Source: Ascidiella aspersa (lineage: Eukaryota). From it: 64,000 bases of DNA. How positions within the stretch are numbered: position 1 is the stretch's first letter; every line of letters begins with the position of its first letter. The notes beneath the pieces were generated by a model. It was not told where the DNA came from and ran no database searches. It saw only the letters and a program-made list of their open reading frames with translations. Of the stretch, positions 787-23,900 are shown in pieces. A program made the translations under genes and the position numbers. Location of the stretch: the NCBI GenBank assembly GCA_963924565.1, contig OZ004609.1, positions 22,940,001-23,004,000 on the forward strand. The letters are read 5' to 3'.

Positions 787-1289
787 AAAATGTGTTAAAC
801 GCTACACAGCGCAAAAAAAGAATGGGAAAAATTTCCATACACAGCAATAAAACATAGCTTTTTTATTGTTTAGAGCAGGTCGAGCCAGCTTCTGTTTGAT
901 TGCGGTCGACTAAAATATTCTCGATCTTCTGGCTTGATAAAAACTCACAAGAACACTTATTAAACATTTTGAGTATAAATTGCATTATGAGTAATAATTG
1001 AAAAATAAAGTGGTTCAACTACCTGTTTATTGCATATAAAATTAAACTCCCAAAATAGTCTAGATTACAACTGTACTGTATTTTTTCTTAATATTTTGTT
1101 TTTTGCAGAATATGATTTGTTTTACAAACACACAAATATAAAAAGTTACAATTTACTTTTTTTAGCTACCTTCCAGAATTAAAACAACAAATTTAAATAA
1201 AATGATCTGTTTTATGTCGGTGCTCTAAAACCTAACATGAATGTATGATAAAAAGATATTAGTATATTGGTTTTATGAATAAGTGTTTA

Positions 1290-1340
1290 AAAAAAAGGCA
1301 TAAGGAAAGGTTGACAAAAAAAGGCATAAGGAAGGTTGAC
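1290..1340. repeat. Short tandem duplication (~26-bp unit) next to a candidate 5'UTR donor at 1354
   Basis: AAAAAAAGGCATAAGGA(A)AGGTTGAC occurs twice; TAG|GTAAGA donor at 1354 and TTTTTAG acceptor at 1467 upstream of the DIS3L2 ATG. Confidence 0.6.
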
Positions 1341-1495
1341 AAATGATCACTAGGTAAGACTTTTGAATTATTTCAGTTTGTAGCAATGTTTGAAACTTTG
1401 CTTAAGTTGTAAATGTGCGACAAATAATGTGAAAAAGGCCACTTCTTATGTTTGTTATATTTTTTAGAACATCAAGATCTATAACATCTTTAAAT

Positions 1496-4400
1496 ATGAG
1501 TGGACGAAAAGGAAAGTTGAGCAAGTCTTCACCAAGCCAAAATTCCAAAAAAATGTTTTCAAACAAAAGGTAACTACCATTATTTGCAGTTATCTTGGCA
1601 AAATGCTTTTATAGTTTAGTTAAAATGGCTATGAGTAGTTTTTATTTAAATGGTGTTGTAATTGGTGTAATAAACAAAATTATTAGAGAAGACACTAATG
1701 TATGTAACAATGTTTAAATGTTTTTTCTATAAGATGTGCACTATTAGTTTTTTTGTTTTAACTGCATTTTATTTAAAAATATGTGTATAAAATTGTGTTC
1801 AAACCCTATTTTTAGTTGTAACATTTTTGATGAAAGATATTTGTTTTATTATCGATGTCTATAAAAACTAATAACAAAAACTGTTTTTTAGCAACACATC
1901 ACAGAACAACATAAATGAAGTGTGGCCGGGTCCAAACCACAGAGTAGTAACATTTTTTTGCAGACTGAATGCGCCAAAATTTAATGTTGACCCTATTGCT
2001 AAATTATTTGGAACAGTTGAAAAGCACACTTGTGTTTCAACCAAGAATTTCAACTTGGTGACTATTTAACGTATATATTTGTTGAAATTGTCTGTAAAGT
2101 ATATTTTTTCCCAAAAAAGATAAAAGTTAGCATTGATACAATCTGTGAAATCTGTCTTAGTAGTATTTGCAATACCAACAATTTTATTAATACCTGTTTG
2201 AATTGATTTTGTTATTTTCAACTTTCGCTTAACAAGTTGTTATTAAGTCCAGGAACATAGTATAATAAATCGATTTTGTTAATAGATAAAGGTTGAAATG
2301 TCTACCAGTGCTGAAGCGATAGCACTATGGAACAACTACAAGACTGTATCATTGCCTGGAGTATTACACGTCACCCCTGATAGAAATCCAGTATGTATCC
2401 TTATGTTTGTTTAGTTATAATATATTATACTAAATAGTGCAATAATATTTAACTTGTAAATACACTAAAATATTTGTAAAGCATAGTATATTTCTGTCAA
2501 TTATGCAGTGATTGAAATATGGTTTACTATAAAAATAACTTTTGATTTGGCTATGAAAATTTTTTTTTGATATTGCATGTGATTTGTTTAGACACTTCAA
2601 AACGAAAAGCATTATGAAGAATTCTGGTCTGAAGCAGATGTTAAAAAGGGTCTTGAAAGTGGAGAACTTGTTTCAGGAAATCTACGAATAAGTTCTAAAA
2701 ACTTTCGTCTTGCCTTTATAAGTGCTGAGGTTTGGTTTAAATTCCGTTTGTGTAGTAATTACCGGCTGTTCACGTAACACACCACATTGTCTTAGAACAC
2801 AAATTATGAATGCCCAACTACTGCGAGAGTCACACTTATATACAGACACAGGAATAAGTCATAAATGTCGCACACAACAATCCTATACACAGGGTTGCCA
2901 TCGAAGTGGACCCCAAAATAAGGACAACCAAAAAATTAGATTAGTATTTAAAAAACGTTTTTGGACATGCATTGTATTTAAACGAGCCATATCATATCAC
3001 ACTCCATACTTTTTGCCAGAAACAATCTGCTCCAGCAATTTATCAAGGTTTTTGGTTGTTTTTCGGTCTCCTCCTGTCAATGTTGCTTGAAAAACGCTAT
3101 TTTAAAAATCCGACACATAACGGGATCGACTAGGTGAAATGTGGCTATGAAATTTTCCCATTACCAATCACTTCGCAAAAAAATGCTGCCTTTGACACAC
3201 CCTATTCTGCTGAAGCCTAAACAGCTGCAACCTTGTACTGCTGTTTTCTGCTAAAATGTTTGTCAGCTGCTGTATTCTGGTAGAGCAGCCAAAACAGTTG
3301 TACCACTGCCTTATACCTATCTTTCCACTTAAGACTAAAATATTGAGACTTGTTCGCCACGGGACTACCTTTTCATTTATGATGTCATAAAATCTCGGCG
3401 CAAAGCATAATTTTAGAATATTATTTAACACTGGGTACCAAAGGAAAATAATCAAAGTTCTGCAGTTGTTGAAAATAAGACAAAATAATGACACACTTTG
3501 AAAATAAGAATATTTCTTAGAAATAAGGACATTTAATTTTTCTAAGACCTGGCCCCTTAAAATAAGGACAAATCTTAGAAATAAGGAAGGTATGGCAACC
3601 CTGCCCATACAACACCATATCACATATAAATAACTCTACAGTTCATATATCTGGTAATAGCATTATTATTTTTGTGGCCACATGGAAATAATCTTTTAGT
3701 TTCCTTTAATTGCATTGTACCAACAAAATAAGTATGTATAGATTAAAATTGTGTTTATGAATAATGTATATACAGAGTGGGCCAAAAGTAGGCTTACAGT
3801 TATAAAAAGCCCCCCACCCACCCACAAAAAAAAGAAATCCATTTGTGTCAGGTCAGGTGAGCGTGGTGGTCATTCAATGCTACCTCAGAAATGTTTAATA
3901 ACGGTAAGCCTACTTTTGGCCCACCCTGTTTAAATAAATTGTATAAAAAAGAACACTGTTCTCAACACACAGTGACATAATTTTTGGATATTTAAACAAG
4001 CTGGGTATTTGTTCGGATAAAACCAGCAGTAAATGTTTTTTTAAGGTATGGTGGCAATTGTGTTTGCAAATTTAGACTGCTTTACAGCTTGTGGAGCAGG
4101 CACCTAATGCCTGCTTAATACTAAATGTTACAAATTATGTACACAATAACAAACGATTCAGAAGCAAACTAAATGTTATCTTGCAGAATGGCAAAGATGT
4201 GGTTATTGTCGATTTACTTGCTCGGAATAGAGCCTTAGTAAACGATGTTGTTGCTGTAAAGGTTAACAACGAATCTCAATGGCTGGTAAGGCTTCTTTAT
4301 TTGTAAGAGTCATTTAATAAGTATATAAGAATTAACAGGGTGATTTATGTAAAATGGTTTATGTTTCCACCTGTAAGTGTAGCCAACATTAAAGATGGGA

Positions 4401-7400
4401 TAATTTACAAATACTAATTCACCTTTGTTGCAGTTTCTTCCTAAGGTGCTTAACATTAAATAACATTTGTATGAAAAGACATGTTCTCATTAAGAGACCT
4501 ATTTCATGGTCAGGTGTCGTTTTAACTTACCACACCACATTTTTGCATCAATAAAGTTGCATTTTTCCAGCGTCCAGAAGACAAGGGTGGCAACAGGGAA
4601 GGTGTATCAAATAACACTTCTGGTGATCTTGCAGAAGGTTTAAATAAATTGTCTGTGAATGCTTCAAATGGAAATCCAGCAACATCCCCAGGTAATGGTA
4701 ACTTAAAAAGTAAAGAGTAATGTCCGATACTTGACATTTTATTCCGATATCGATAATTATTGATATTTTGGACAAAAAGTATTGCAATATAATCCATGAA
4801 CAAACGACTTTATTACTATGCTTAAACAATCTAGGTTATTAGGCCAAAATTTAGTGTTCAGAAGTTCAGTAACCTCCAACATTTAACCTACTATTGTCTG
4901 ATAAATTACCTTTAAATGTAGTTGGATCACAAATCATGTCCAAATTTCTGTGTTAATTTGGTATCGATCAGCACCAATACAACCCAAGTATCGAACTAGT
5001 AACTATACTACCACTTTTGATTGGGTATCTGCTCCAATCCTATATTGTCAAATGTTCCTAAAAGTAAATGGACATAAGAGCCCCTCGCATCCTGATGTAC
5101 ATTTACACACCGAAAAATCCAAACAGCAAACTCTTTCCTAAAAACTGTGTCAGTCATTTATCACATTTCCTAAAATAAGGGATTTTAACTATTGCCTTAC
5201 CTAGAGATTTTAATGTTGTTTGTAATGACAGGTAAGAACAACTTTTCGAGGACAACAAACTTTAAAGACGTCAGAAAGACGGGACATGTAGTTGCCATCC
5301 TTGAACGGAGGCATAATCGTATGGCCAGTGGCAAGCTGACCAAGCAGGTAAGATATCTATGGGTTGTTGTTATGATATAAGCGCAATATATTTGTTATAT
5401 GTGTGAATTTTGTGATGAGGTATATTTTTAAAGTTATTTCTCGTTTTGTTGTTAATGTAAAAAAAATGATAACAGTTTTATTTTAGTACTTTATATTTTT
5501 ATAAATTAGGTTGTTTATGTTACATCAGTCAATACAAAAGTATTTACCAGATAATATCAATTCTATAGGCTAACCAGTACCGCTTCGAATCCACCAACTC
5601 CACGTTCCCGCGAATTTACATCCCCAAACAACAAGTGGAGGCGAAACTCAACAAGCAGAATTACACCAACGTGATGTTTACCGCGAAAATTACAGATTGG
5701 GATAAAACAAGTCTGTTTCCCCAAGGGTAGATTTGGCCAAAGTTTTTCATTTAGTTTTAAATTTTGACTTTAAACGTCCGTAATTTAGTGCCATTTGTGT
5801 CAGCATCCGGGTTTCGAGTGTGTTACACGTCGTTGACAATGTTTTCATTATTTGAAAATTTCACTTAATAACATCCACTGGGTTTTGCAATCTAACTCCC
5901 AAGTGAGAGTATCGGTACCCGTCCAAACTAGGGTGGTATTGATGTCGATCCGATAGCAAATTACTTAAAAGTAATCATTTGAGCTTGGTATGGTTTGTAA
6001 TATAACTGAAACTGTTTCCCAACGCCCGCGATTTTTTGCTTGAAAAGCATCACGTTTGTACGTTTCATTTTAATTCAATGTTGCTTATTTCACCATGATA
6101 ATCATGCAACTTGGTTTTTGAGAGGATTGACGGTACTTGGCCAAAATATGGAGTATCGATTTTGAAATGTATTACGCAATATCGGACATCAGTACTCGTT
6201 ACGAATTTCTACCTCAATTTAAAAATAAAAAACATTATTTGAAATTTATTTAATTTTTCGCGTCCCTTCAAAAGATTTTTATTCCCACTGCTACCCTAAC
6301 GCGCCTTTTTTCGTCGCCTTTGACGACGATTTTAACGCAGTGCTTTGGTTTTGTAGGGAACTGTGCGAATGCATTGGAAACATGGGCGAAATCGAGGCCG
6401 AGACGCGGGCCATTCTGTTCGATCATGACGTCGATTCTGAGGAATTTAACGAATCGGTAACCGACTGTCTCCCCAAGCAACTGCCCTGGTCCGTACCACA
6501 GGTCGGTCGATTTTTATTACGGCGTGTACTTATGTCAGTGCACCGTAAAGTCTAAATTTATCTGTCTGCAAATTTTGCTTTGTCGAAGAAAGGGTCAACT
6601 GTATACAGTATATACTAAAATGACCATATGTTTTATAAGTAAAATATAATATATCGGAATGCTTCGATTTTTCAGGCCGAAAGAGAACGCAGACGTGATT
6701 TCACAAACGAGTGCATATTTTCCATCGATCCTTCGAGCGCCAGAGACTTGGACGACGCGTTGCACTGCAAAGCTTTAGGAGAGGGTAGCTTGTGTTTTTG
6801 CATTGAGTCGGTAATGCTCGTTGTGTGACGAGATATTTTGCATTTTTAATCAAAATAACCCTTCTGGCAATTAATTGTTTTTGTTTTAAAACATTTTGAT
6901 TCCTACGTACAATGTACGGCGGGAGAGCTATTTTGATTAACATTAAGACTGATAGCAACAGTTTATCTATTTGGTAGCTTTATTGGTAACTTGGCCATTC
7001 AAATACCCTCTCGTATTTAGTTGTTAAATTATAACTTCTACCTGGGATAACATCACATCCCGATATAATTTGATTGGGGCACATTTTTTTTACAAACTTG
7101 CCAAAAAAAAACAGTAACTTCAATCAGCTTTCATGGGATAAATGTATTTTTGACATATTCCAATGAAAGCCGCTTTTAGCTGTCGACGATTAATTTGTGG
7201 ACCATAAGCGACCTAAAGATGTGTACTCGGGCATTTAGAGTTTTTTCCAGTAAAAGTGAAAGATATCTTTCAACTTAAATCAAAGCGTGTCAAGTTGTCA
7301 ACTATACACCAACTTGATTCAAAACTTCGCCTTTCTCTAAAATTTGTTGAAACAAAGATCGCCTATAGTTGTCTCAGTGTGTTTATTTCTCGCGACAACC

Positions 7401-10400
7401 CCATAACAGTCTTCCCGCACCTTTTCCAGGCAAGTACGAGGTGGGTGTGCACATTGCTGATGTGAGCCACTTCGTGAAGCCCGGCACGGCGGTAGACCAG
7501 GTGGCCAACCAGCGCTGCACCTCGGTATACATGGTACAGCGGGTCGTGCCCATGCTACCACGACTGCTGTGCGAGGAGCTGTGCAGTCTGAATCCCGGCC
7601 AGGAGCGACTTGCTTTCTCCGTTGTTTGGACTCTTAACGAGCAGGGAAAGGTGAGCAGGAGTCTTGGAGCGGATTGCTGGCTTGATTCGTTTTTATACCG
7701 GGAAAGCCAGGTTGATTGTATGGGTGTGACCGAATAGTTTTCTCTGTTCGTGTGCTATTTTAGTTTTCGTTATTGTACTGTTTTATCTTGAGTTTCTTAG
7801 ATCGCAAAATAAGATGAATCTGAATCTGGACCATCGCTAATGTTTCAAGTAGTGCTAGAAACTGTATTAAGTGTACGTCGCCTGAACGTAGGTTGAACAA
7901 CATTTTATTAATCGGATCAAAAATTGAATTTTCTTGTGAAGTTTTAACGAAATCAGTCTGCCTATTATATAAACAATTTAAAAGCATGACAGTGCCCCAA
8001 CCGTTCTTCGGTCGTGTGTTAATTCAACATGGCAATTTTTACTACAATTGTAAAGTGAACTTGCATCTTCCTTTTGATATTTCCTTGGATCGGGTCGCTT
8101 TATTTTGTGTAATCTTTATGGCGAACAGACTAGCAAGGTTGAACGAACGTTTTACTTTGTGCCAGGTCTTCTCGCAATGGTTCGGCCGCTCGGTGATCAA
8201 CTCGTGCGCCAAGCTGAGCTACGACCACGCCCAGTCCTTCATCGAAAAACCCGAGCGCGACTTCGCCGTTCCCGATCAAGCCGCCCAGGAAAAGGAGTTC
8301 CCCGACATTAGTGGCGGCTACTCTCTCAACGTCATCAAGGAAAAAGTTCTCACTCTTCACAAGGTTAGCTGGTGACGAGCTTTAGATAGACACGTGCCCG
8401 CCGTTATTAGTTTGCAAGACAATTTTTTTGTTAACGAAAGAAATGAAAACACTTCTAATAGAAACAATATATTTTTATCTCTTTAAAACAATGTCATTTT
8501 CAGTTGGGAATGTAAAGAAAGCTATTTTATATGAATATAATAAAATCGAAATTTCTCCGTTTTTCAAACGATTCGCCAATATATCTTGTATTGCACAATA
8601 AATATTACCAAACATCAGTGTGAAAATTCAGGTTTCCTTGACTTAAATTTTCACACTGGTCGTAAAGAAAACTGGTAAAATGTTTGAATAAAACAACATG
8701 TTTATTTTACCAAGGGCCGGTGTATTGTGTTCCTGTGTCACTTTTGCGAAATTTACTACTTCACCCAAATACGATTAAATAAATCATCATTTGAAAGTGA
8801 ACACACACCCGAATCACTTAACTTTTTACTTCGTTTTATTTATTTCCCGACAATTAGGCGACAATCTTGATTAAAGCATATTTTTTGTCGTGTTACCTTT
8901 TACATCGAGTAAAGCAATACTTTTCAGAAACAACACGTTAACAATAATAAACAGTATTAAAAGGAAGAATTTAACTTTAGAACCTATCAGAAGATCGCCA
9001 AAAAAAAAAAATTTAACACGATAAAAAAGTATTACATTTAAAGAAATTTACATCGGACAGAATGGAATTCAACTGGGTAGAATCCGTCAGAAAACTACAA
9101 CTGAGATGGTAACATCGATTTTTTGACCAATAGTAAACTAATCTCACGTAGCAAAAGCTGACCAGTAAAAACTGGACAGTCAAGAAACAATTTATCTATT
9201 GGTGTTCATGAAGCAACGCAATAACGAATTCAAACCCGTTTTTTTTTTCAGATCGCTCAGAACCTCCGCGAGCAGCGAAAGCGGGACGGCGCTCTGCGTC
9301 TTGATCAGGTTCGACTCGCCTTTACACTTGACTTGGAAAAAGGCCTGCCCATCGGATGCTACCCGTACCAGTACAAGAAAAGCAACGAGTAAGAGTGTGG
9401 TAACAGGTCCTGGTGTCTGCGACACCTTCATATATAAGCCTGTTTTATCACCTGTTAAACAATATTTAGTGTTCATTCGTTTTCAGTTTTTGGCTGTGCT
9501 TTGTGTTTGTTATGTTGTGATTTTTAAGCCTTCTATTTTACTGCGAATCTAGGAAACTTTATTTAGTTTATCACCTAAAGAATGTAAATTGAAGACTACA
9601 CAAATTCCGCAAAAAATAACAGCGGGTTTCTTAACGGGTTTTGTGCTGCCTTCACTAAGTAGTATATCTACAATGCACCGCCTGATTCTTAGACATTTTC
9701 GTCACGTCTTGAAGTGAAAAAAAAATTTGAAATGTTCATTGCCAACCGATTTCACCTTTTTAGGCTCATCGAAGAATTCATGCTGCTAGCCAACATCGCC
9801 GTGGCGCATAGGATTTTTAAAAATCTGCCCTCTCAGGCGTTTTTGCGTTGTCACCCTGAGCCCAAAGAGGTGAGCGTTAGCGCGCAGTGACAACTTTTGC
9901 GCGTTGAATTTTTCTTCAGGAAAGTTTTATTTTATTTTGAAGTTTTTATCTTCATTTTTAGGAAATGATGAAAGATGTCGTCTCGCATTGCAACGAGATC
10001 GGTCTTCCTATTGATGCAACAAGCTCCGAGACACTGTCGGTTAGTTTGCGTAAGCTTACAACGCTTTCAACTTTGATTTATATACGATACATAGCATGAT
10101 AATGAATTGCAAAGCCAAAAAGGTCTAGTAGCTCGACATCATCTTCAGTTAATGTGTGTACACAGCTACATTACAGATTCGTACATAGTGTACCGAAAAA
10201 AACACATATTATTGCAAAGATAAAAAAGCACATATTGTAAAGCTAGTTCTTGATTATATATACACATACGTATATTTTGTAATTTAGCCCATTGAAGGTA
10301 AACCGGCCCAAAAAATTTTGGCCTGCATAAAACCTTTACCGAGACGAAGCGCCCTAATTAGAGTTGTGCGGTTTTATTTCTTGCTTTGCTTGTTCCTGAC

Positions 10401-13400
10401 AAGGCCGGAGAATTTAGATTTAGTCTTTGAAAAGGAAACTCTATTTATATTGTGCTGCGCTGCTTGCAATTACACATTGATGTTTTGTTTTTTGCTGCGC
10501 TCATATTCTGTAATGATAACTTTATAAAAAAGGGAAAATGAAAAGCTGTTTAGTTTTGTTTCCTATGTTTTGCTAATCCGTTGGTTAGGGCTAACATCCT
10601 CTGTTGTTTGCTGCAGCATTCGTTGGAACAGGCAACCGGCGATGACGAATACTCGACCTGCCGCAAACAAGCCCTTTTCATGCTTGCCATCAAACCACAA
10701 CAGGTAACGTTTTTTTAACGAATTGTTTTTGTTGAATTAGTCAATTACACAGGTTTCGTTTTGGTATAGATGTCTACTCCTTAGAGGTTTACAGTCAACC
10801 TGTTTTGAAATTAGGAATGACTTTTTACCTAAAAATCATGCCAAAGGTTATGTTGCCGGCAAGCTTGTGTTCAAATTTGCTACATACCCGATAAAAAGGT
10901 TCTTACAACCGTGGCCCGGATACAAAATTTTGTCTAGAACTTTGTAATTTAATTCAACTAAAAAGAACGAACAGTTCACCATTTATAGGATATTTTCGTT
11001 TGGGTAAACATTAAATAATAATTTGTTTTTAATCTCGAATCTTATCGAAGTGCGGAGGGTCGTAACAAACACTTTTAGAAATAACAAGTTTAAACCTGGA
11101 CTCTGGAGTCGGATTTTCCATCGTTTATCGGTTCCGAACTAGGTACTGCTAAAGACTCCACACACATAAACCGACTCCTTCGGGGTCCGATTCAAATCGG
11201 GCTCCGCGATATTTGTTTTACAGGCCCCCATTGTACTACTTTCCGCACAGATTATTTATTAGTTTTCATGTCCTAGGGGAAAAACAATACTCCCAAATGG
11301 TTATTCGTTGCTGATCCCGATGTAGTCATCCTAACTGGCATTGTCGTTTTCTGGCTAATCGCTTTTTCGTTTTTCAGCTGGCCCAGTATTTCTGCGCCGG
11401 TGTGTACGATGACCAGAGGCGCTATCGTCATTACGCGCTCAACGTCCCACTCTACACTCACTTCACTTCGCCCATCAGGAGATACGCCGACCTCGTGGTT
11501 CATCGGCAGCTCGCCGCAGTGTTGGGTAATTTCCATTAAATTTAGAAACACTTATGTGAATATAAGAGATAAGGAATCGCTTGCTGATTCTAAGATGTAA
11601 AAGAAAGATTCTTTCGGAAAATGTGCATTTGCTACCAGGCATTGTTTCATTCGTAAAATTGTTCTTCCGGCAAAATGTCGTTAAATTACCAATGTTTCGA
11701 CCACCTATTTGGGAAGTCTTATTCAGGGCAATATAATTGCAACTATGTGCGAAATATATATATACCAGACAAACAGTAAAATAAAACCAACAAAACAAAT
11801 AGTTGTAATTATATTGCCCTGAAAAAGAATGTCCGAATAGGTGGTCAAACGTTGGTACTTTAATAATTTTTTGCTGGAATATAAATTTTACAAGTGAACG
11901 GTTCTTACTTTCGAATCAGTTGGTTTACACTGTTTTGTAAAAATAGTTATAAAAGCCTAAACTATTTCTTGAAATTTACTAAAACATGTATTTCGCTTAA
12001 CAAAATCGGCATCCCCTGTTTAAAGATGCGTTGTGCAAGTCACCCGCCGTTCTCTGCAGACATCTGCAAGCGTTAAACTTCGGTAAACATTTTACATTGC
12101 CTTGACTTGTTGTTTGTTTTTGTACGTTAGTCACTATTAACATTGGATTTTTTTAGGATAACATGGATTAGTTTGCTTGATTCGCGGCCCGGTTGCTAAC
12201 TAAGTTTCACAAGCAGAAAATAGAGTGACCAACCGCTTAACTTTGTACGTTTTGTCGAACTTTTCTTGAATTAATTTTTTTTAATACTATGTTTCCATTT
12301 CTCTCTCTCATGAAAAAAACTCCTCTTATTTCTTTACAATATAATTCAACAAAAAACATTTTTTAAACACTCAGATTTTTTCAGGTGACGATTCCGACTT
12401 TAAGATGATGAACACGCAAGTCGACTCCCTCAACTCGCAAGCGCAGTTGTGCAATCACAGGAAGACAAACTCGAAGAGCGCGCAAGAAGCCAGCGGCGAC
12501 CTCTTCTTTAATGTTCTCGTTAATGTGAGCAATTTTCTTGTTTTGTTTATTAGTTTATCCTTGCTACTATAGTTTTAGTTTTCGCATGCGCCCTGCTTTC
12601 GAGAGAAATTAAGGGGTCTTTCTGAACCAACTGATTAATTTAAATTACTAATAGGTCAGAAACTTTAGTTTGCATATAACTAGTAACTTCATTGGCTATA
12701 ATGACGTAAAATGCCAAACAAGACTTGCACATTCCTACTCTTAATCGCCAGTAATATTTTTGTATGTTTTTTTTTCATTAACCTGAAATGTTGAGCAATG
12801 CTTTCACATTCACAAAACAAATTTACATTTGACAAAATGTGAAAACCTGACTTAGCAAATGTGAAACCTGACTTTTGATTAACAACACAGTTGAATCAGT
12901 TATGCATAAATGCATATTCGAATCTATACTTAAACTAATCGTTGATATTAATTACCACTAAATCGGAATTTATGATTTATTGAAAACCTTAATTGTATTT
13001 ATAATTTAGCTTGCCACTCCATACACAGAAAACGTGATTAACAAGTTAAACCATGATTTTTCTAAAATAGTTTTGTATTACCAATTTATGGCTACGCAGA
13101 AATCGCAAAATTATTGGTTGAAATGCTTGGCGTTAAACCAGATTTTTAACCATTGCAATATTTTTGGGATCGCGGATCAGTTATCGATCGGCAAATGCTG
13201 ACCAAGTATAGTGTTTGTTTGTAAAGTTTCAAATAAAGCAAAAGGTTTTTGTTTAGAACTTCGGACCACTTGAATGTCGTGGTATGGTGATGTACGTCAA
13301 CGATCTGAGCCTTGACGTTCTTTCAGTCGAATATGGCGTCGTGAAACGGGTTTATTTTGACGTGAGTTTAATTCCTATGGTATTCAATTTCCTTAAGTGA

Positions 13401-16361: not shown

Positions 16362-18665
16362 GTTGTTCTGTTTGGTATTGGTGCACAATATCCTGTACGA
16401 AAAAGGAAAAATATATTTTTAATATTGAGTGGAATTAACAAAAAATATCCATTTAATGAGCAAAGCTGTCATATCAAGCTTGAAAGCTTATGGAATTCAG
16501 GCTTACAAGTTCCCAAATAGGACCAAAGTGTTTCTGATTTTGAACAAAATATTCCGCAGACTATTGTTAGGGTTATTTCGAAGGTCACTCTGGCTCACGT
16601 CACATTTCAGGGTCTATTTGACCAATTAAAGGGTTGGTTATGGTATAATACAGGGGTGTGGAACTTTTTACACTGCCGGGCCAAATATGTGTATTCGGAT
16701 TAGACCACGGGCCACTTGCACATACCTCGTCGATCACCTGTTAGTGACTAACACAAAAAAAAAACGTTTTGCTTTTAAAGAATCAAAATCACTTTAATGA
16801 GAGCATTGAAGCTGGCCTGCTTTCCCAACCACCCTATCCAGGTTCACGTTAATTTAAGTGCTGGCAACCCGAAGTCTCCACACAATCTGTTCTGAGCGAT
16901 GTGGGGATTTCATGCACCCCAGTTTAGAAAAAAATGTTCACACACGCACGATGAACCGAATAACGCAATCTTTGAAGTAACAAGTTTTCTGAGCTGTGGA
17001 AATTTATTAAGATCGAGATGATTGCGGTGAAAAAATACTTTTTAGATGCGCAGAGAGATTTTTTTCTTTTTTTTACAACTCACATGAACATTGAAATTGG
17101 TTGAAAAACAATTACAATTCAATTTTTCAAATGAGCGCCCTGTAGAGTGTAGACTTAACCTTTTACCACATAACTTAATAGTAAGTCATTTCAAACCAAC
17201 TTGTTTATAACGACACCAAAGCAAATCGCTTTGAAGGATCTTATAGTTTCCTAGCGGTCTTAGTGATGTATAAGAATATCAAATACTCATGGTTACATTT
17301 GTGTCGGTTTCAAACATCAATGACCAAGCAGTTTAACTAATTAAGATTTATTGACACGATTGCATGGCAAACGTCAAACTTTTATCACCAATGTTGCAAA
17401 CATTTCTCACACATAACAGTAATCAAAAAAGAACAACAACAACAGCAAGTAAGCTTTCCGTCCAGTATATTTTATTTTTATTACTTTTAAACTTAATAAA
17501 TATTGTTAAAAAATCTATTTTTTTTACGTAATTAAGATGACAACACTTAGGCTATGACTTGATACCAGGTTTCTACTGGACATAAACACTCGCGGTAGAA
17601 AATATTGTAAACACCTCGATTCAAGGTCAAGCAGTGGACGGCGCAAACTACTACACGCCATTTGGTGGACGGCAGGTTGTATGCAAATTGCACTAAGGGT
17701 ATTTTACGATTGGACGACAACTTCGATTAATTGGCAGCAGGTTGAATAATAATAATAGACACTAATAGCAGTTCTTATTCTATACGACGAGGAAATTTCA
17801 AATTTTGACACCGTCGTTAATATGATTGCGCGCTTACTAATATCATAGCAGGTTGATTGACGTACCAAAATCAAAGCATAGTGGTGAATATGATTTAGAT
17901 AAACGCTACTTTATGGCTCAATATCGCAAGTTAAAATTTCAGTTTACAAGTAGCAGCCTTTCTGCATATGTGGCTGTTTCCGAACAAATTCGATGGTATT
18001 TGATCACGATAACAAAACAAAAAACAGATTCTTTTAACATGGGTGTATGATATATTACGCTTGATTTTTGAGGCAGCGCATGCCCAATGAACCTAGAATC
18101 AAGTTAGCAAGAAGAACCATTTAAACATTTAGGAGGGGTCAACCAAGATGTTGGCGGTTAGATCAGAGTTTTGTAGTTTGAATTTAAGGTAGAATGGCCT
18201 TCTACTTTTTCTTTCACAAAGAATAAAACGTGGGCAAGCTCACAAGCACATTATCGTTTACACAGTATGAGCACACCACAACGAATCAAGAACACTATAA
18301 TAGTACGGCATAAAAAAAATAAAAGGCTACATGTTGTTCAAGTTTAAATGATTGAAAGCAAAAGTTGGAAGACATTTGATTTTATGGAGATATCGTCTAC
18401 TGGTAAGATTTGATATAAATAAGGTTGACTGTGGATAAAAATACAGCGATCTACTGACAAAAAAACTTGTATTGTAAAGTCATTACATCTTACAAACACA
18501 TCTTGCACCCTGAATAATAAGTTATATAGAGAAGAAAATACCATATATTACAAAGCCGGAATCTTTATTCAATTCATCCGACTTTTTGAAACTACAGGGC
18601 AGGCATTTTTGCAAACGACAAATAAAGTATGAACAAAAAGCAGCAAAACAAAAAAAATTAAATTT

Positions 18666-19540
18666 TCATCGAACCAGGCGCTGGATGTAGGCGGCCACGT
18701 CGGGCACTTTGGAAGCCTGCAAAGCGGCGATCAGCTGTTCGATATTGGCCTGCTGGCCATTGCACGTCAGCCACATTCGCAACATGAACGATCGCTGGCG
18801 AGCCGGCTCCTTGGGGTAGCGCCGCTCCACGTAGCTGATTATCCTTTGCGCGTTGCGCCACTCGTTCCGCACCGGTGACTTGCCGGCGGATGTCGACGAC
18901 GCCGATGACGTCGATGATGAGTCGTCGCTGTCAGTGAGGTCCTTAGCGGGTGGAGCTGGAGATGCTTGAGGTGCCCGGGTCTTAATGTCGGGCAGGGCGA
19001 GATTTGAGACCACTTGCTCTGGCCACTGCAGGTGCTGGCAGAGTGTGGTCCAGTGCACGCCGTTGTCTTCAAGTCCACCCTCGATGTACGCGAATGCCTC
19101 ACGCAAGTCTGTGAGGAAATTCGGGTATATGTTTATATTCCTATGGGCTATTGGTATATATTTTTGCATGAGTATTTTACCAATGAAACCTTAAAACACA
19201 AGTTTACAGATTTGAATATCATTATGGGACAGAAAAAATTGCAAGTAAACTGTATTATATAACTTAAAACTACGTACTGTCTAGCCGAGATTTGAGGACG
19301 AATGTCTTCTCTCTGACGGCGGGTAGCGGGATTCGTAGTTGCACAGATTGCAGTCGATTTCGTAGGATTTCGGGATCGGATTTCTCCAGGTAACGTTTGT
19401 TCCAGGCAGCTCTGCTGTTGTAGAACCTTTCCATTTTCTCTTGTAAGGACGCGGCGTATTCTTCGCTTATCCTCACTTTTTCTTGCATAGCATCAAGATC
19501 CGCTCGTTGGGATCGAACCCGGGACTCCATGAACTCGTAG
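18666..19540 (-). pseudogene. Duplicated copy of the last two exons (19540-19278, 19108-18666) of the death-domain gene
   Basis: Identical translation to 21829-21567 and 21397-20955, retaining the acceptor, intron, stop and AATAAA but with no upstream exons of its own. Confidence 0.75.
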
Positions 19541-20852
19541 CTACGAAAAAAAATACTTATATATACAATTTTCTAAAATTTTATTTACAATGATTTGTTC
19601 AAACATCAATGACCAAGCAGTTTAACTAATTAAGATTTATTGACACGATTGCATGGCAAACGTCAAACTTTTATCACCAATGTTGCAAACATTTCTCACA
19701 CATAACAGTAATCAAAAAAGAACAACAACAACAGCAAGTAAGCTTTCCGTCCAGTATATTTTATTTTTATTACTTTTAAACTTAATAAATATTGTTAAAA
19801 AATCTATTTTTTTTACGTAATTAAGATGACAACACTTAGGCTATGACTTGATACCAGGTTTCTACTGGACATAAACACTCGCGGTAGAAAATATTGTAAA
19901 CACCTCGATTCAAGGTCAAGCAGTGGACGGCGCAAACTACTACACGCCATTTGGTGGACGGCAGGTTGTATGCAAATTGCACTAAGGGTATTTTACGATT
20001 GGACGACAACTTCGATTAATTGGCAGCAGGTTGAATAATAATAATAGACACTAATAGCAGTTCTTATTCTATACGACGAGGAAATTTCAAATTTTGACAC
20101 CGTCGTTAATATGATTGCGCGCTTACTAATATCATAGCAGGTTGATTGACGTACCAAAATCAAAGCATAGTGGTGAATATGATTTAGATAAACGCTACTT
20201 TATGGCTCAATATCGCAAGTTAAAATTTCAGTTTACAAGTAGCAGCCTTTCTGCATATGTGGCTGTTTCCGAACAAATTCGATGGTATTTGATCACGATA
20301 ACAAAACAAAAAACAGATTCTTTTAACATGGGTGTATGATATATTACGCTTGATTTTTGAGGCAGCGCATGCCCAATGAACCTAGAATCAAGTTAGCAAG
20401 AAGAACCATTTAAACATTTAGGAGGGGTCAACCAAGATGTTGGCGGTTAGATCAGAGTTTTGTAGTTTGAATTTAAGGTAGAATGGCCTTCTACTTTTTC
20501 TTTCACAAAGAATAAAACGTGGGCAAGCTCACAAGCACATTATCGTTTACACAGTATGAGCACACCACAACGAATCAAGAACACTATAATAGTACGGCAT
20601 AAAAAAAATAAAAGGCTACATGTTGTTCAAGTTTAAATGATTGAAAGCAAAAGTTGGAAGACATTTGATTTTATGGAGATATCGTCTACTGGTAAGATTT
20701 GATATAAATAAGGTTGACTGTGGATAAAAATACAGCGATCTACTGACAAAAAAACTTGTATTGTAAAGTCATTACATCTTACAAACACATCTTGCACCCT
20801 GAATAATAAGTTATATAGAGAAGAAAATACCATATATTACAAAGCCGGAATC

Positions 20853-20858
20853 TTTATT
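20853..20858 (-). terminator. Candidate poly(A) signal of the death-domain gene (duplicated at 18564-18569)
   Basis: TTTATT on + (AATAAA on -) ~97 nt after the stop codon in both copies. Confidence 0.5.
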
Positions 20859-20954
20859 CAATTCATCCGACTTTTTGAAACTACAGGGCAGGCATTTTTG
20901 CAAACGACAAATAAAGTATGAACAAAAAGCAGCAAAACAAAAAAAATTAAATTT

Positions 20955-23900
20955 TCATCGAACCAGGCGCTGGATGTAGGCGGCCACGTCGGGCACTTTG
21001 GAAGCCTGCAAAGCGGCGATCAGCTGTTCGATATTGGCCTGCTGGCCATTGCACGTCAGCCACATTCGCAACATGAACGATCGCTGGCGAGCCGGCTCCT
21101 TGGGGTAGCGCCGCTCCACGTAGCTGATTATCCTTTGCGCGTTGCGCCACTCGTTCCGCACCGGTGACTTGCCGGCGGATGTCGACGACGCCGATGACGT
21201 CGATGATGAGTCGTCGCTGTCAGTGAGGTCCTTAGCGGGTGGAGCTGGAGATGCTTGAGGTGCCCGGGTCTTAATGTCGGGCAGGGCGAGATTTGAGACC
21301 ACTTGCTCTGGCCACTGCAGGTGCTGGCAGAGTGTGGTCCAGTGCACGCCGTTGTCTTCAAGTCCACCCTCGATGTACGCGAATGCCTCACGCAAGTCTG
21401 TGAGGAAATTCGGGTATATGTTTATATTCCTATGGGCTATTGGTATATATTTTTGCATGAGTATTTTACCAATGAAACCTTAAAACACAAGTTTACAGAT
21501 TTGAATATCATTATGGGACAGAAAAAATTGCAAGTAAACTGTATTATATAACTTAAAACTACGTACTGTCTAGCCGAGATTTGAGGACGAATGTCTTCTC
21601 TCTGACGGCGGGTAGCGGGATTCGTAGTTGCACAGATTGCAGTCGATTTCGTAGGATTTCGGGATCGGATTTCTCCAGGTAACGTTTGTTCCAGGCAGCT
21701 CTGCTGTTGTAGAACCTTTCCATTTTCTCTTGTAAGGACGCGGCGTATTCTTCGCTTATCCTCACTTTTTCTTGCATAGCATCAAGATCCGCTCGTTGGG
21801 ATCGAACCCGGGACTCCATGAACTCGTAGCTACGAAAAAAAATACTTATATATACAATTTTCTAAAATTTTATTTACAATGATTTGTTCAATCTGTATTG
21901 TGTCGGCATAAAACGTTGTGGTGAAGAAAGAAAGTAGTTTTAGAGATATGTTAATTGCCTGTTGTTGGTCTAAAATACACAAATCAAGTACTGTCAAATT
22001 TGCTTACTTTCTGTCGCGTTGTTCGATTTTGGTCCCAAGCATTATTATTCGTTTGCGTAACGCTCGATGACGCGCCCTCAAGTGGTCTACATTTTCCGAC
22101 GTTCTGCGCAAAGTAATCTCCAGCGTTTTTCGTTGGTCCTGGGATCGCTCCAAATCCTAAAACACCAAGTAACGAGTTAAACCGACGGACTTTAAGAGCA
22201 GGATGACAGTTAATAAGAGTACTCAATTAACTACTGTAAGAAGTTAAACAGAGTGAGTAAAATTACACTTATTTAAACTGCTCTCACTTCTCGCATTATG
22301 TCGATGTCGTGCTCCAATGTTTCCAGACGAGTGGAGTTGGTGTGAACTTCTGAGATCATGTGTTCCAATTCGCTGAGAAGTTGCCGGTGTTGCTGTCTCG
22401 CCTGTTTAAAAATATAAAATCGCTAAAAGGCCAGTACATGAAGCTACCTAAGTTTACCGCCAATATGGTATAATCACTGTTGATTTCTAACTTTCCTCAC
22501 TTTTGGAGCCAGTATTTACATAAATTGTATAACAGAGCACAACAATACCTCTTGCCAAAGCCTCTCGGTTTTGATATATCTTCTGTGAGCTCTGTGAAGT
22601 CCAGATTTTGCCTGTCTCGTGTCGAGGACGTCGCGTTTTAACCAGAAGTTCGACTTGTCCGTTACGTCATTGAATTTAGTCAAAACGTCCGGTAGAAGGC
22701 GCAAGATAGCAAATCTATCACAATCGACCAAATCCGCGACCTGAGATTGTTAACAAGGACTGATGAGCAAAACTAAATAGCATATTTGGTTAAGTTTTGG
22801 CAAAAAACCTTTATTATAGAAAAAATTGTCATTATAACTTATAAATAAAATAAAAACACTCAAAAGCAACTTTTCAGAAACTATCGACGTGCGGGGTTGT
22901 TTTCCGTATTATAGTCTCCAGGGATATTATTTGCGGTAATATTTTTGAAAATAATAAATCGACTGTATAAAAAATATTTTAAAATTTTAAATGACACAAT
23001 ACTTTTCCTTTAAATCTTTAAAGGCGGTTATTTATTAAAGAAAAGTTAAATACCTCTGAAAGTTGAAATACTGTTTGCACATCACTTGTTTTAGTTGCCA
23101 AATCATGTTCTGCCGCCTTACCTTCTTGGACACGCCGTGGTTTGAAAAGATCGCGACGTCAATACTGTCTTGAGGAGGCCACAGAAGCTGGCGGATCTGG
23201 TTTAGGGTTTGGACAATGGCGAACTCGATCTGGTGCAGATCGCAGACCGGGTTTTTGTCAAGGTCTTCCGCCGTGTTCTCCTTGGCCCTATCTTTGTTAG
23301 CCCGCTGTTGTTGACCTTTAGACATGCTGTAACGTAGAGAAATGTAAGTAAGCCTGATTTTGGTCCGACTCAGTCGGGGAAGGCGTGACAACCATTACAC
23401 ACTATAACGGTTGTGCTCATGTAGAGAAACTTTCGGGCGATTTCGACTTAGTGAGGTTGAGTATGTTAAGGACTAATACTGTAGGTCAGTTGATGGTATG
23501 GGCGTGTTTGAGTTGGATACTTAATTTTAGCTTTTAGTATAAAAAAAATTTTAGCAGTTAGTATAAATACGAATTCATTTTTCAAAGAGACTAGTCACAA
23601 AAATCGTTGACGCTGTTGTTAAAAAGATTAACATACTCGATCGTTTCATCACGATTAGAAAACAAACACAACTATAGAAAATGCTGACTGACCTTGTCCG
23701 CTGCTGCTTGCAGAAGGTTTGTAAGGGCACTAGCACACGCTGAGAGAAGGTGGACAGCGTGTTTTGCAAAGTGCGCACGTGTCGATCCACGTCATCGACG
23801 AAGCGACGTAACCGGTCGTGACGTTCGCTCACAGCCACGTCATCACCATCGGCGAATGCGGGTTGCGACGGTGGCGAAGTCCTACGGCGCAGCGGCGACG

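Follow-up and report, generated by a model that had tools for sequence, protein, structure and literature searches.

In vertebrates and in fission yeast, DIS3L2 is a 3'-5' exonuclease for oligouridylated RNA, with the domain order CSD1-CSD2-RNB-S1 and no PIN domain. The enzyme clears oligouridylated transcripts such as pre-let-7, aberrant non-coding RNAs and uridylated messenger RNAs, and its loss in humans leads to Perlman syndrome. In the solved DIS3L2 structures CSD1, CSD2 and S1 build a funnel that reads the oligo-U tail, and substrate choice rests on this funnel. To our knowledge, the region before CSD1 is just short or disordered in the DIS3L2 enzymes described so far. Here, we analyse a DIS3L2 gene of the tunicate Ascidiella aspersa in which this region is longer. 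It is a multi-exon gene on the plus strand and lies within the first 14 kb of a 64,000-nucleotide stretch of genomic DNA (assembly GCA_963924565.1, contig OZ004609.1, positions 22,940,001 to 23,004,000), which is called the window below and to which all coordinates refer unless another contig is named. The gene resembles its vertebrate and fission-yeast counterparts in having RNB and a C-terminal S1-like domain, probable CSD1 and CSD2, a short basic N-terminus and no PIN domain, and it is present in a single copy. It differs from them between the N-terminal tail and CSD1, where two extra exons encode a module of about 90 residues that looks folded.

An accessory domain in front of CSD1 is otherwise familiar from DIS3/Rrp44 and DIS3L1, which are organised as PIN-CSD1-CSD2-RNB-S1 and in which the PIN domain, of about 200 residues, serves as an endonuclease or tethers the enzyme to the exosome. 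The arrangement described here is alike in that an RNB core is combined with an accessory domain N-terminal to CSD1, but the module is only about 90 residues long and does not match PIN, and the DIS3-like gene of this genome is a separate one on another contig. That DIS3/Rrp44-like RNB gene (L049:1294-3033, minus strand, at ~29.009 Mb of contig C5) consists of one 939-residue open frame, of which 579 residues are visible in the locus, and is apparently intronless, unlike the many-exon DIS3L2.

Two additional exons between the N-terminal tail and CSD1

Sequence evidence over positions 1000-4400 came from raw stranded RNA sequencing (RNA-seq) reads from one run of the same species (X4) and from three Logan contig sets (X1, X2 and X3), of which X1 and X2 resemble genomic DNA in their even depth across introns. 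The RNA-seq reads define five GT..AG joints, all on the plus strand, at 1353/1468 (40 reads), 1569/1892 (60 reads), 2057/2286 (82 reads), 2390/2592 (63 reads) and 2729/4187 (40 reads). Read depth lies evenly at 65-81 across exons 1-4 and is 0 in the introns.

The gene starts with a 5' non-coding exon at ~1180-1353, its approximate start being taken from the rise in read depth from 14.5 at 1114-1227 to 51.7 at 1228-1341. Near the end of this exon an in-frame ATG at 1343, right after a TGA at 1337, could add 13 residues to the protein. Exon 1 (1468-1569) bears the ATG at 1496, and its 74 coding nucleotides (1496-1569) translate into a basic, Ser/Lys-rich N-terminal tail. The two extra exons follow: exon 2 (1892-2057, 166 nucleotides), flanked by the joints with 60 and 82 reads, encodes 55 residues and one split codon (NTSQNN...KNFNL), and exon 3 (2286-2390, 105 nucleotides) encodes 35 residues (IKVEM...PDRNP). 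CSD1 begins in exon 4 (2592-2729) and continues in exon 5 (4187-4285), where loose ends at 4285 lead to the next exon. The borders of exons 1-4 are AG/GT throughout, and a single reading frame is shared by all four.

From the sequence alone it had been proposed that two exons splice in frame between the ATG-bearing exon and the first CSD1 exon and add about 90 residues. Translation and RNA joints confirm the coordinates of both, and the three junctions named for verification (1569/1892, 2057/2286 and 2390/2592) are all present, with 60-82 reads each. In addition, one 467-nucleotide Logan contig of X3, which derives from a separate study, spans the spliced exons 2, 3 and 4. No joint bypassing exon 2 or exon 3 is listed in X4 at the listing threshold of 3 reads, and depth is 0 at 2140-2253. 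Given these joints, the even depth and the X3 contig, no transcript was seen that lacks the two exons or whose start lies at 2286 or further downstream. The exons together measure 271 nucleotides, which is not divisible by 3, so that dropping both shifts the frame; they are thus obligatory for the open reading frame (ORF). In DIS3L2 of this species, an expressed, in-frame insertion of about 90 residues separates the basic N-terminal tail from CSD1, and the insertion is included in all transcripts seen.

Single-base differences among the sequencing runs provide a measure of constraint. In the 511 nucleotides of coding exons 1-4 there are 0 listed differences, compared with 22 in 966 nucleotides of flanking introns. 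For exons 2 and 3 alone (271 nucleotides), 0 are listed, whereas the intron rate predicts 6.2 (Poisson P ~0.002); the counts are of differences listed, and since 9 further differences lie outside the listing, the P value is indicative only.

Two other features of this region were observed. The 5' untranslated exon contains, at position 1272, a 4-nucleotide deletion allele that is present in 24 of 52 RNA reads and also in contigs of X2 and X3, and roughly half of the reads have a T>A difference at position 1288. The sequenced animal thus appears to be heterozygous, with expression of both alleles. Intron 4 is occupied at 2830-3965 by repeats of very high copy number, the summed contig depth of the DNA runs reaching 12,000-33,000 at 3736-3963 compared with 40-95 in unique sequence. 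Many contigs break inside these repeats at 3767-3770 and at 3809; a short and abundant transposable element or miniature inverted-repeat transposable element (MITE) is the probable explanation.

Domain architecture of the remaining protein

Pfam scans were run on single exon-containing open frames, and all features named here lie on the plus strand. Exon 4 alone matches Rrp44_CSD1 (PF17216) at profile positions 4-36, with E 0.005 and 17 bits against a cut-off of 22 bits. The open frame of the CSD2 exon (6229-6552) matches OB_Dis3 (PF17849) with E 1.3e-4 and 22.4 bits against a cut-off of 22.8. These single-exon scores are low because introns split both domains. The exons of the catalytic domain extend over 6643-11536, with motif I near 6700; six exon frames match RNB (PF00773), with E 2e-33 at best, and jointly span profile positions 1-325, and the conserved Asp motif DxxxxxDxDD is visible in the translation, within a 16-residue motif. 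The start of the DIS3L2-specific C-terminal S1-like domain is found in the open frame 13257-13397, which matches Dis3l2_C_term (PF17877) with E 3.3e-11 and 43.8 bits (cut-off 31.6). Across the 308.6-Mb assembly, this is the only locus at which the family exceeds its cut-off.

A PIN domain is absent upstream of CSD1: the 5' end of the gene is defined by RNA-seq, and exons 1-3 do not match any Pfam family. The Pfam domains, the sole Dis3l2_C_term locus and the lack of PIN identify the gene as this genome's only orthologue of DIS3L2; that it is a DIS3L2 agrees with the original prediction. Judging from its sequence, the protein outside the module looks like a catalytically intact DIS3L2. The N-terminal module itself is real, and it is new to this enzyme family.

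Predicted fold of the N-terminal module

The two exons had been suggested to encode an RNA recognition motif (RRM), and specifically an RRM1 of the type known from polypyrimidine tract-binding protein (PTB) and hnRNP-L. All searches, profiles and folds described in this section were made on each exon peptide separately. The elements proposed for exon 2 are beta1 (RVVTFFCRL), alpha1 (VDPIAKLFG), beta2 (HTCVST) and the first part of beta3 (KNFNL); those proposed for exon 3 are the end of beta3 (IKVEM), a 10-residue alpha2, a beta-hairpin with beta4 (YKTVSL and VLHVTP) and a linker. The proposed beta3 thus straddles the exon junction. AlphaFold2, run without an alignment, places a strand at residues 20-25, a helix at 34-37 and a strand at 45-50 of exon 2 (predicted local distance difference test, pLDDT, 49), and a helix at residues 9-16 followed by a beta-hairpin (18-23 and 26-31) in exon 3 (pLDDT 82). 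The predicted helix and hairpin of exon 3 match what an RRM usually has from alpha2 to beta4. In their predicted order, the elements also fit an RRM, or any other domain with the ferredoxin-like beta-alpha-beta-beta-alpha-beta topology, the turn between beta2 and beta3 being short.

For comparison with PTB, the genome's own orthologue was used. It is found at ~12.288 Mb of contig C4 (L005:1210-2772, minus strand), where all four RRMs are encoded in one uninterrupted ORF of 521 residues; the gene is therefore intronless. Its best named relatives are from Ciona intestinalis (73%), Clavelina (72%) and Styela (65%), and two further close relatives stand at 83-86% PTB identity. With this protein 120 PTB homologues were collected, from which profiles of RRM1-4 were built singly and for all four together. 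A canonical RRM profile was made from 23 RRM_1 exons of the same genome, and a mixed profile was also built. With every HMMER filter switched off, scores were obtained for each exon peptide and for 1000 shuffled versions of it. Exon 3 reaches 5.0 bits on the all-PTB profile, which corresponds to E 0.0015 for one comparison, and none of the 1000 shuffles scores as well; 3 of 1000 do so on the mixed profile and 15 of 1000 on the RRM1 profile. The match is always to the end of beta3, alpha2 and the following loop (profile positions 46-68), which is the register that had been proposed, and hhalign of exon 3 with PTB-derived profiles gives E 0.011-0.04. The best local alignment of exon 2 is a stretch of 13 residues against kfGkVknvkilk, i.e. 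the end of alpha1 and beta2, and is colinear with that of exon 3. The gap implied from one alignment to the other falls within -2 to +2 profile positions for 5 of 7 profiles, as it does in only 2-3% of shuffle pairs.

Considered together, these results place the module probably among small alpha/beta domains. Whether it is a folded domain of ferredoxin-like or RRM-like topology that has diverged beyond ordinary sequence recognition appears to us about evenly balanced. A number of results weigh against such a fold. In the profile comparisons, exon 2 alone never beats its own shuffles on any profile, and on the canonical RRM profile both exons score like shuffles (P 0.1-0.2), exon 3 falling from 5.0 bits on the PTB-derived profile to -1.2 bits and exon 2 having no such preference. 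The profile tests were chosen after the proposed alignment had been seen, and the profiles overlap and are not independent; the register of exon 3 (beta3-alpha2, RRM-like) therefore receives weak support, which is not proof of homology. The AlphaFold2 model of exon 2 is unreliable at a pLDDT of 49. Foldseek and VIA-align gave no informative match for the model of exon 3, which at 35 residues is too short a fragment for such searches.

Direct searches point in the same direction. Neither exon 2 nor exon 3 matches a Pfam family at E <= 10, including RRM_1, RRM_5 and RRM_8, and there is no significant match to a profile of the RRM clan (CL0221) for either exon alone. In a HMMER scan of 1.84 billion representative proteins exon 2 gave a single match (P0001), which was rejected as spurious, being a tandem-repeat protein that matches over only 19 residues. 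Searching the PDB with phmmer returned no relevant sequence for either exon, and BLASTP of the exons against the genome's own PTB was not significant (E 2.8-14). Neither did a word search with exon 2 among proteins of 30-96 residues yield candidates. A six-frame search of the genome revealed no paralogue of exon 2 or 3, returning the locus itself and two weak matches to exon 2. One stretch on contig C9 (6471300-6471458, minus strand; L002:1501-1659) aligns without gaps over 53 codons with 38% identity to exon 2 (E 0.039 genome-wide), contains two TAA stops and has GGTGA where the splice donor would fall. It was considered as a decayed copy of exon 2 and is treated as a probable chance match, with ~50% DNA identity in AT-rich sequence and no partner for exon 3 or 4 nearby. 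The module thus appears to be without detectable sequence relatives, although relatives below ~40% identity could escape a query of 55 residues, and it may be restricted to a narrow tunicate lineage.

With respect to the proposed RRM, the exon-by-exon analysis accordingly leaves the RRM-compatible secondary structure of the AlphaFold2 pieces and the weak match of exon 3 to PTB-derived profiles standing, but the fold searches were empty and no match was obtained in the RRM clan of Pfam, in the PDB or to the canonical profile. The results do not support assignment to the PTB/hnRNP-L type in particular. In its predicted elements the module resembles RRMs of this type in overall order and spacing, with a short loop between beta2 and beta3 as in PTB, and 19 residues of exon 3 align, with weak statistical support, to beta3-alpha2 of the own-genome PTB, LEMESEQIAQKMVEDCTIS. 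It differs from them in that exon 2 has no significant similarity, in the residues at its putative RNP positions, and in being a single domain rather than an array of four. The consensus of RNP2 is [ILV]-[FY]-[ILV]-x-N-L and that of RNP1 is [RK]-G-[FY]-[GA]-[FY]-[ILV]-x-[FY]. By eye, and with no statistic attached, the putative RNP2 (TFFCRL) keeps the aromatic residue at position 2 and Leu at position 6; the putative RNP1 (KNFNL/IKV) keeps Lys, the aromatic residue at position 3 and Ile at position 6, both Gly and the other aromatic residues being absent. Phe is found at the putative RNP positions where RRM1 of PTB has His or Gln; therefore, nothing marks the domain as PTB-type. Capture of exons from the hnRNP-L-like gene on contig C6 was considered as an origin of the module and rejected, the intron position in that gene being different and similarity being absent.

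Alternative explanations

That tunicate DIS3L2 has gained a genuine, highly diverged RRM as a second site for pyrimidine- or U-rich RNA, by which substrates would be pre-selected or tethered, is a tentative possibility, and we hold it to be doubtful. The module might instead be folded without being an RRM, i.e. another small alpha/beta domain or one born in this lineage, used for protein contacts or localisation such as docking of a terminal uridylyltransferase (TUTase) or of a granule component. The negative results with the RRM clan and the canonical profile and the lack of relatives anywhere searched are as expected from such a domain, and the predicted strand-helix-strand and helix-hairpin pieces suit many alpha/beta folds; however, the order and lengths of the elements, the FG motif ending helix 1 and the weak but colinear matches to profiles are all in the register of an RRM. 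We consider this explanation rather unlikely. Many domains of RRM fold mediate protein contacts, and the explanation therefore overlaps in function with an RRM-like module.

It is unlikely that the ~90 residues are a fast-evolving extension, largely unstructured or marginally structured, which the enzyme tolerates and which has no function of its own. N-terminal regions of DIS3L2 differ in length between lineages, those of the fly and yeast enzymes being long and disordered, and this variation, together with the absence of homologues and the low-confidence model of exon 2, would be accounted for by such an extension. Against it, the sequence is not of low complexity, its hydrophobic residues alternate in strand- and helix-like patterns, exon 3 is predicted to fold at high pLDDT even without an alignment, and the two exons lack the listed differences expected at the intron rate. 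Finally, exons 2 and 3 might not be translated as part of DIS3L2, belonging to a 5' untranslated region with a downstream start or to a minor or aberrant isoform, as several short upstream ORFs in the 5' exon could suggest. We regard this as most improbable: the frame from the ATG at 1496 (or 1343) is unbroken through exons 1-4 into CSD1, every listed junction includes the exons at a depth equal to that of the CSD1 exons, and the next in-frame ATG, at 2298, still lies within exon 3, while exon 4 contains no ATG before the conserved part.

Possible function of the module

If the module is a compact domain of RRM-like topology, the short linker PDRNPTLQNEK would tether it directly before CSD1, at the mouth of the funnel of CSD1, CSD2 and S1 that admits the 3' end of the RNA. 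We infer that it would serve as an accessory binding surface. Such a surface might hold upstream single-stranded RNA, possibly U- or pyrimidine-rich, or provide a docking site for a partner, for example a TUTase, and in so doing might bias which uridylated RNAs are taken by the enzyme, or raise local concentration. A protein-binding role that does not involve RNA would be equally compatible with an RRM fold.

Combination of an RRM with an RNA-processing enzyme has precedents. PARN is an exoribonuclease that carries an RRM. Arabidopsis SDN1 and TUT1 are likewise RNA-degrading or RNA-tailing enzymes with an RRM (PMC6123492, PMC6240794). The module would resemble these cases in concept, as a degrading or tailing core is joined to an RRM that helps to hold the substrate. 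In contrast, theirs are DEDD nucleases or nucleotidyltransferases with RRMs recognisable by sequence, whereas here the core is of the RNase II/R type and the RRM is putative. In the literature searched, there is no report of DIS3L2 or of any RNB enzyme fused to an N-terminal RRM.

While we infer both the fold and the function of the module, the architecture is a new variation on a known enzyme. If the module binds RNA or a partner, it would show that the enzyme itself can incorporate the means of selecting or recruiting its substrates, and the gene would offer a simple comparison, with and without the domain, of contacts to upstream RNA or to partners in uridylation-dependent decay.

Other genes and duplications

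The top RRM_1 matches of the genome are tandem clusters of small RRM_1 genes on contig C6, at 4.864-4.899 Mb and 27.703-27.713 Mb (L017-L023 and L029), which look like genes for glycine-rich or CIRBP-type RNA-binding proteins. Within the window, a tandem duplication is present at 17500-22100, with a period of 2289 nucleotides and 100% identity across the 300-nucleotide stretch compared. It comprises two identical copies of a 167-residue ORF and of an 86-residue ORF (ORFs 18666-19169 and 20955-21458, minus strand), and points either to a very recent duplication or to an artefact of the assembly.

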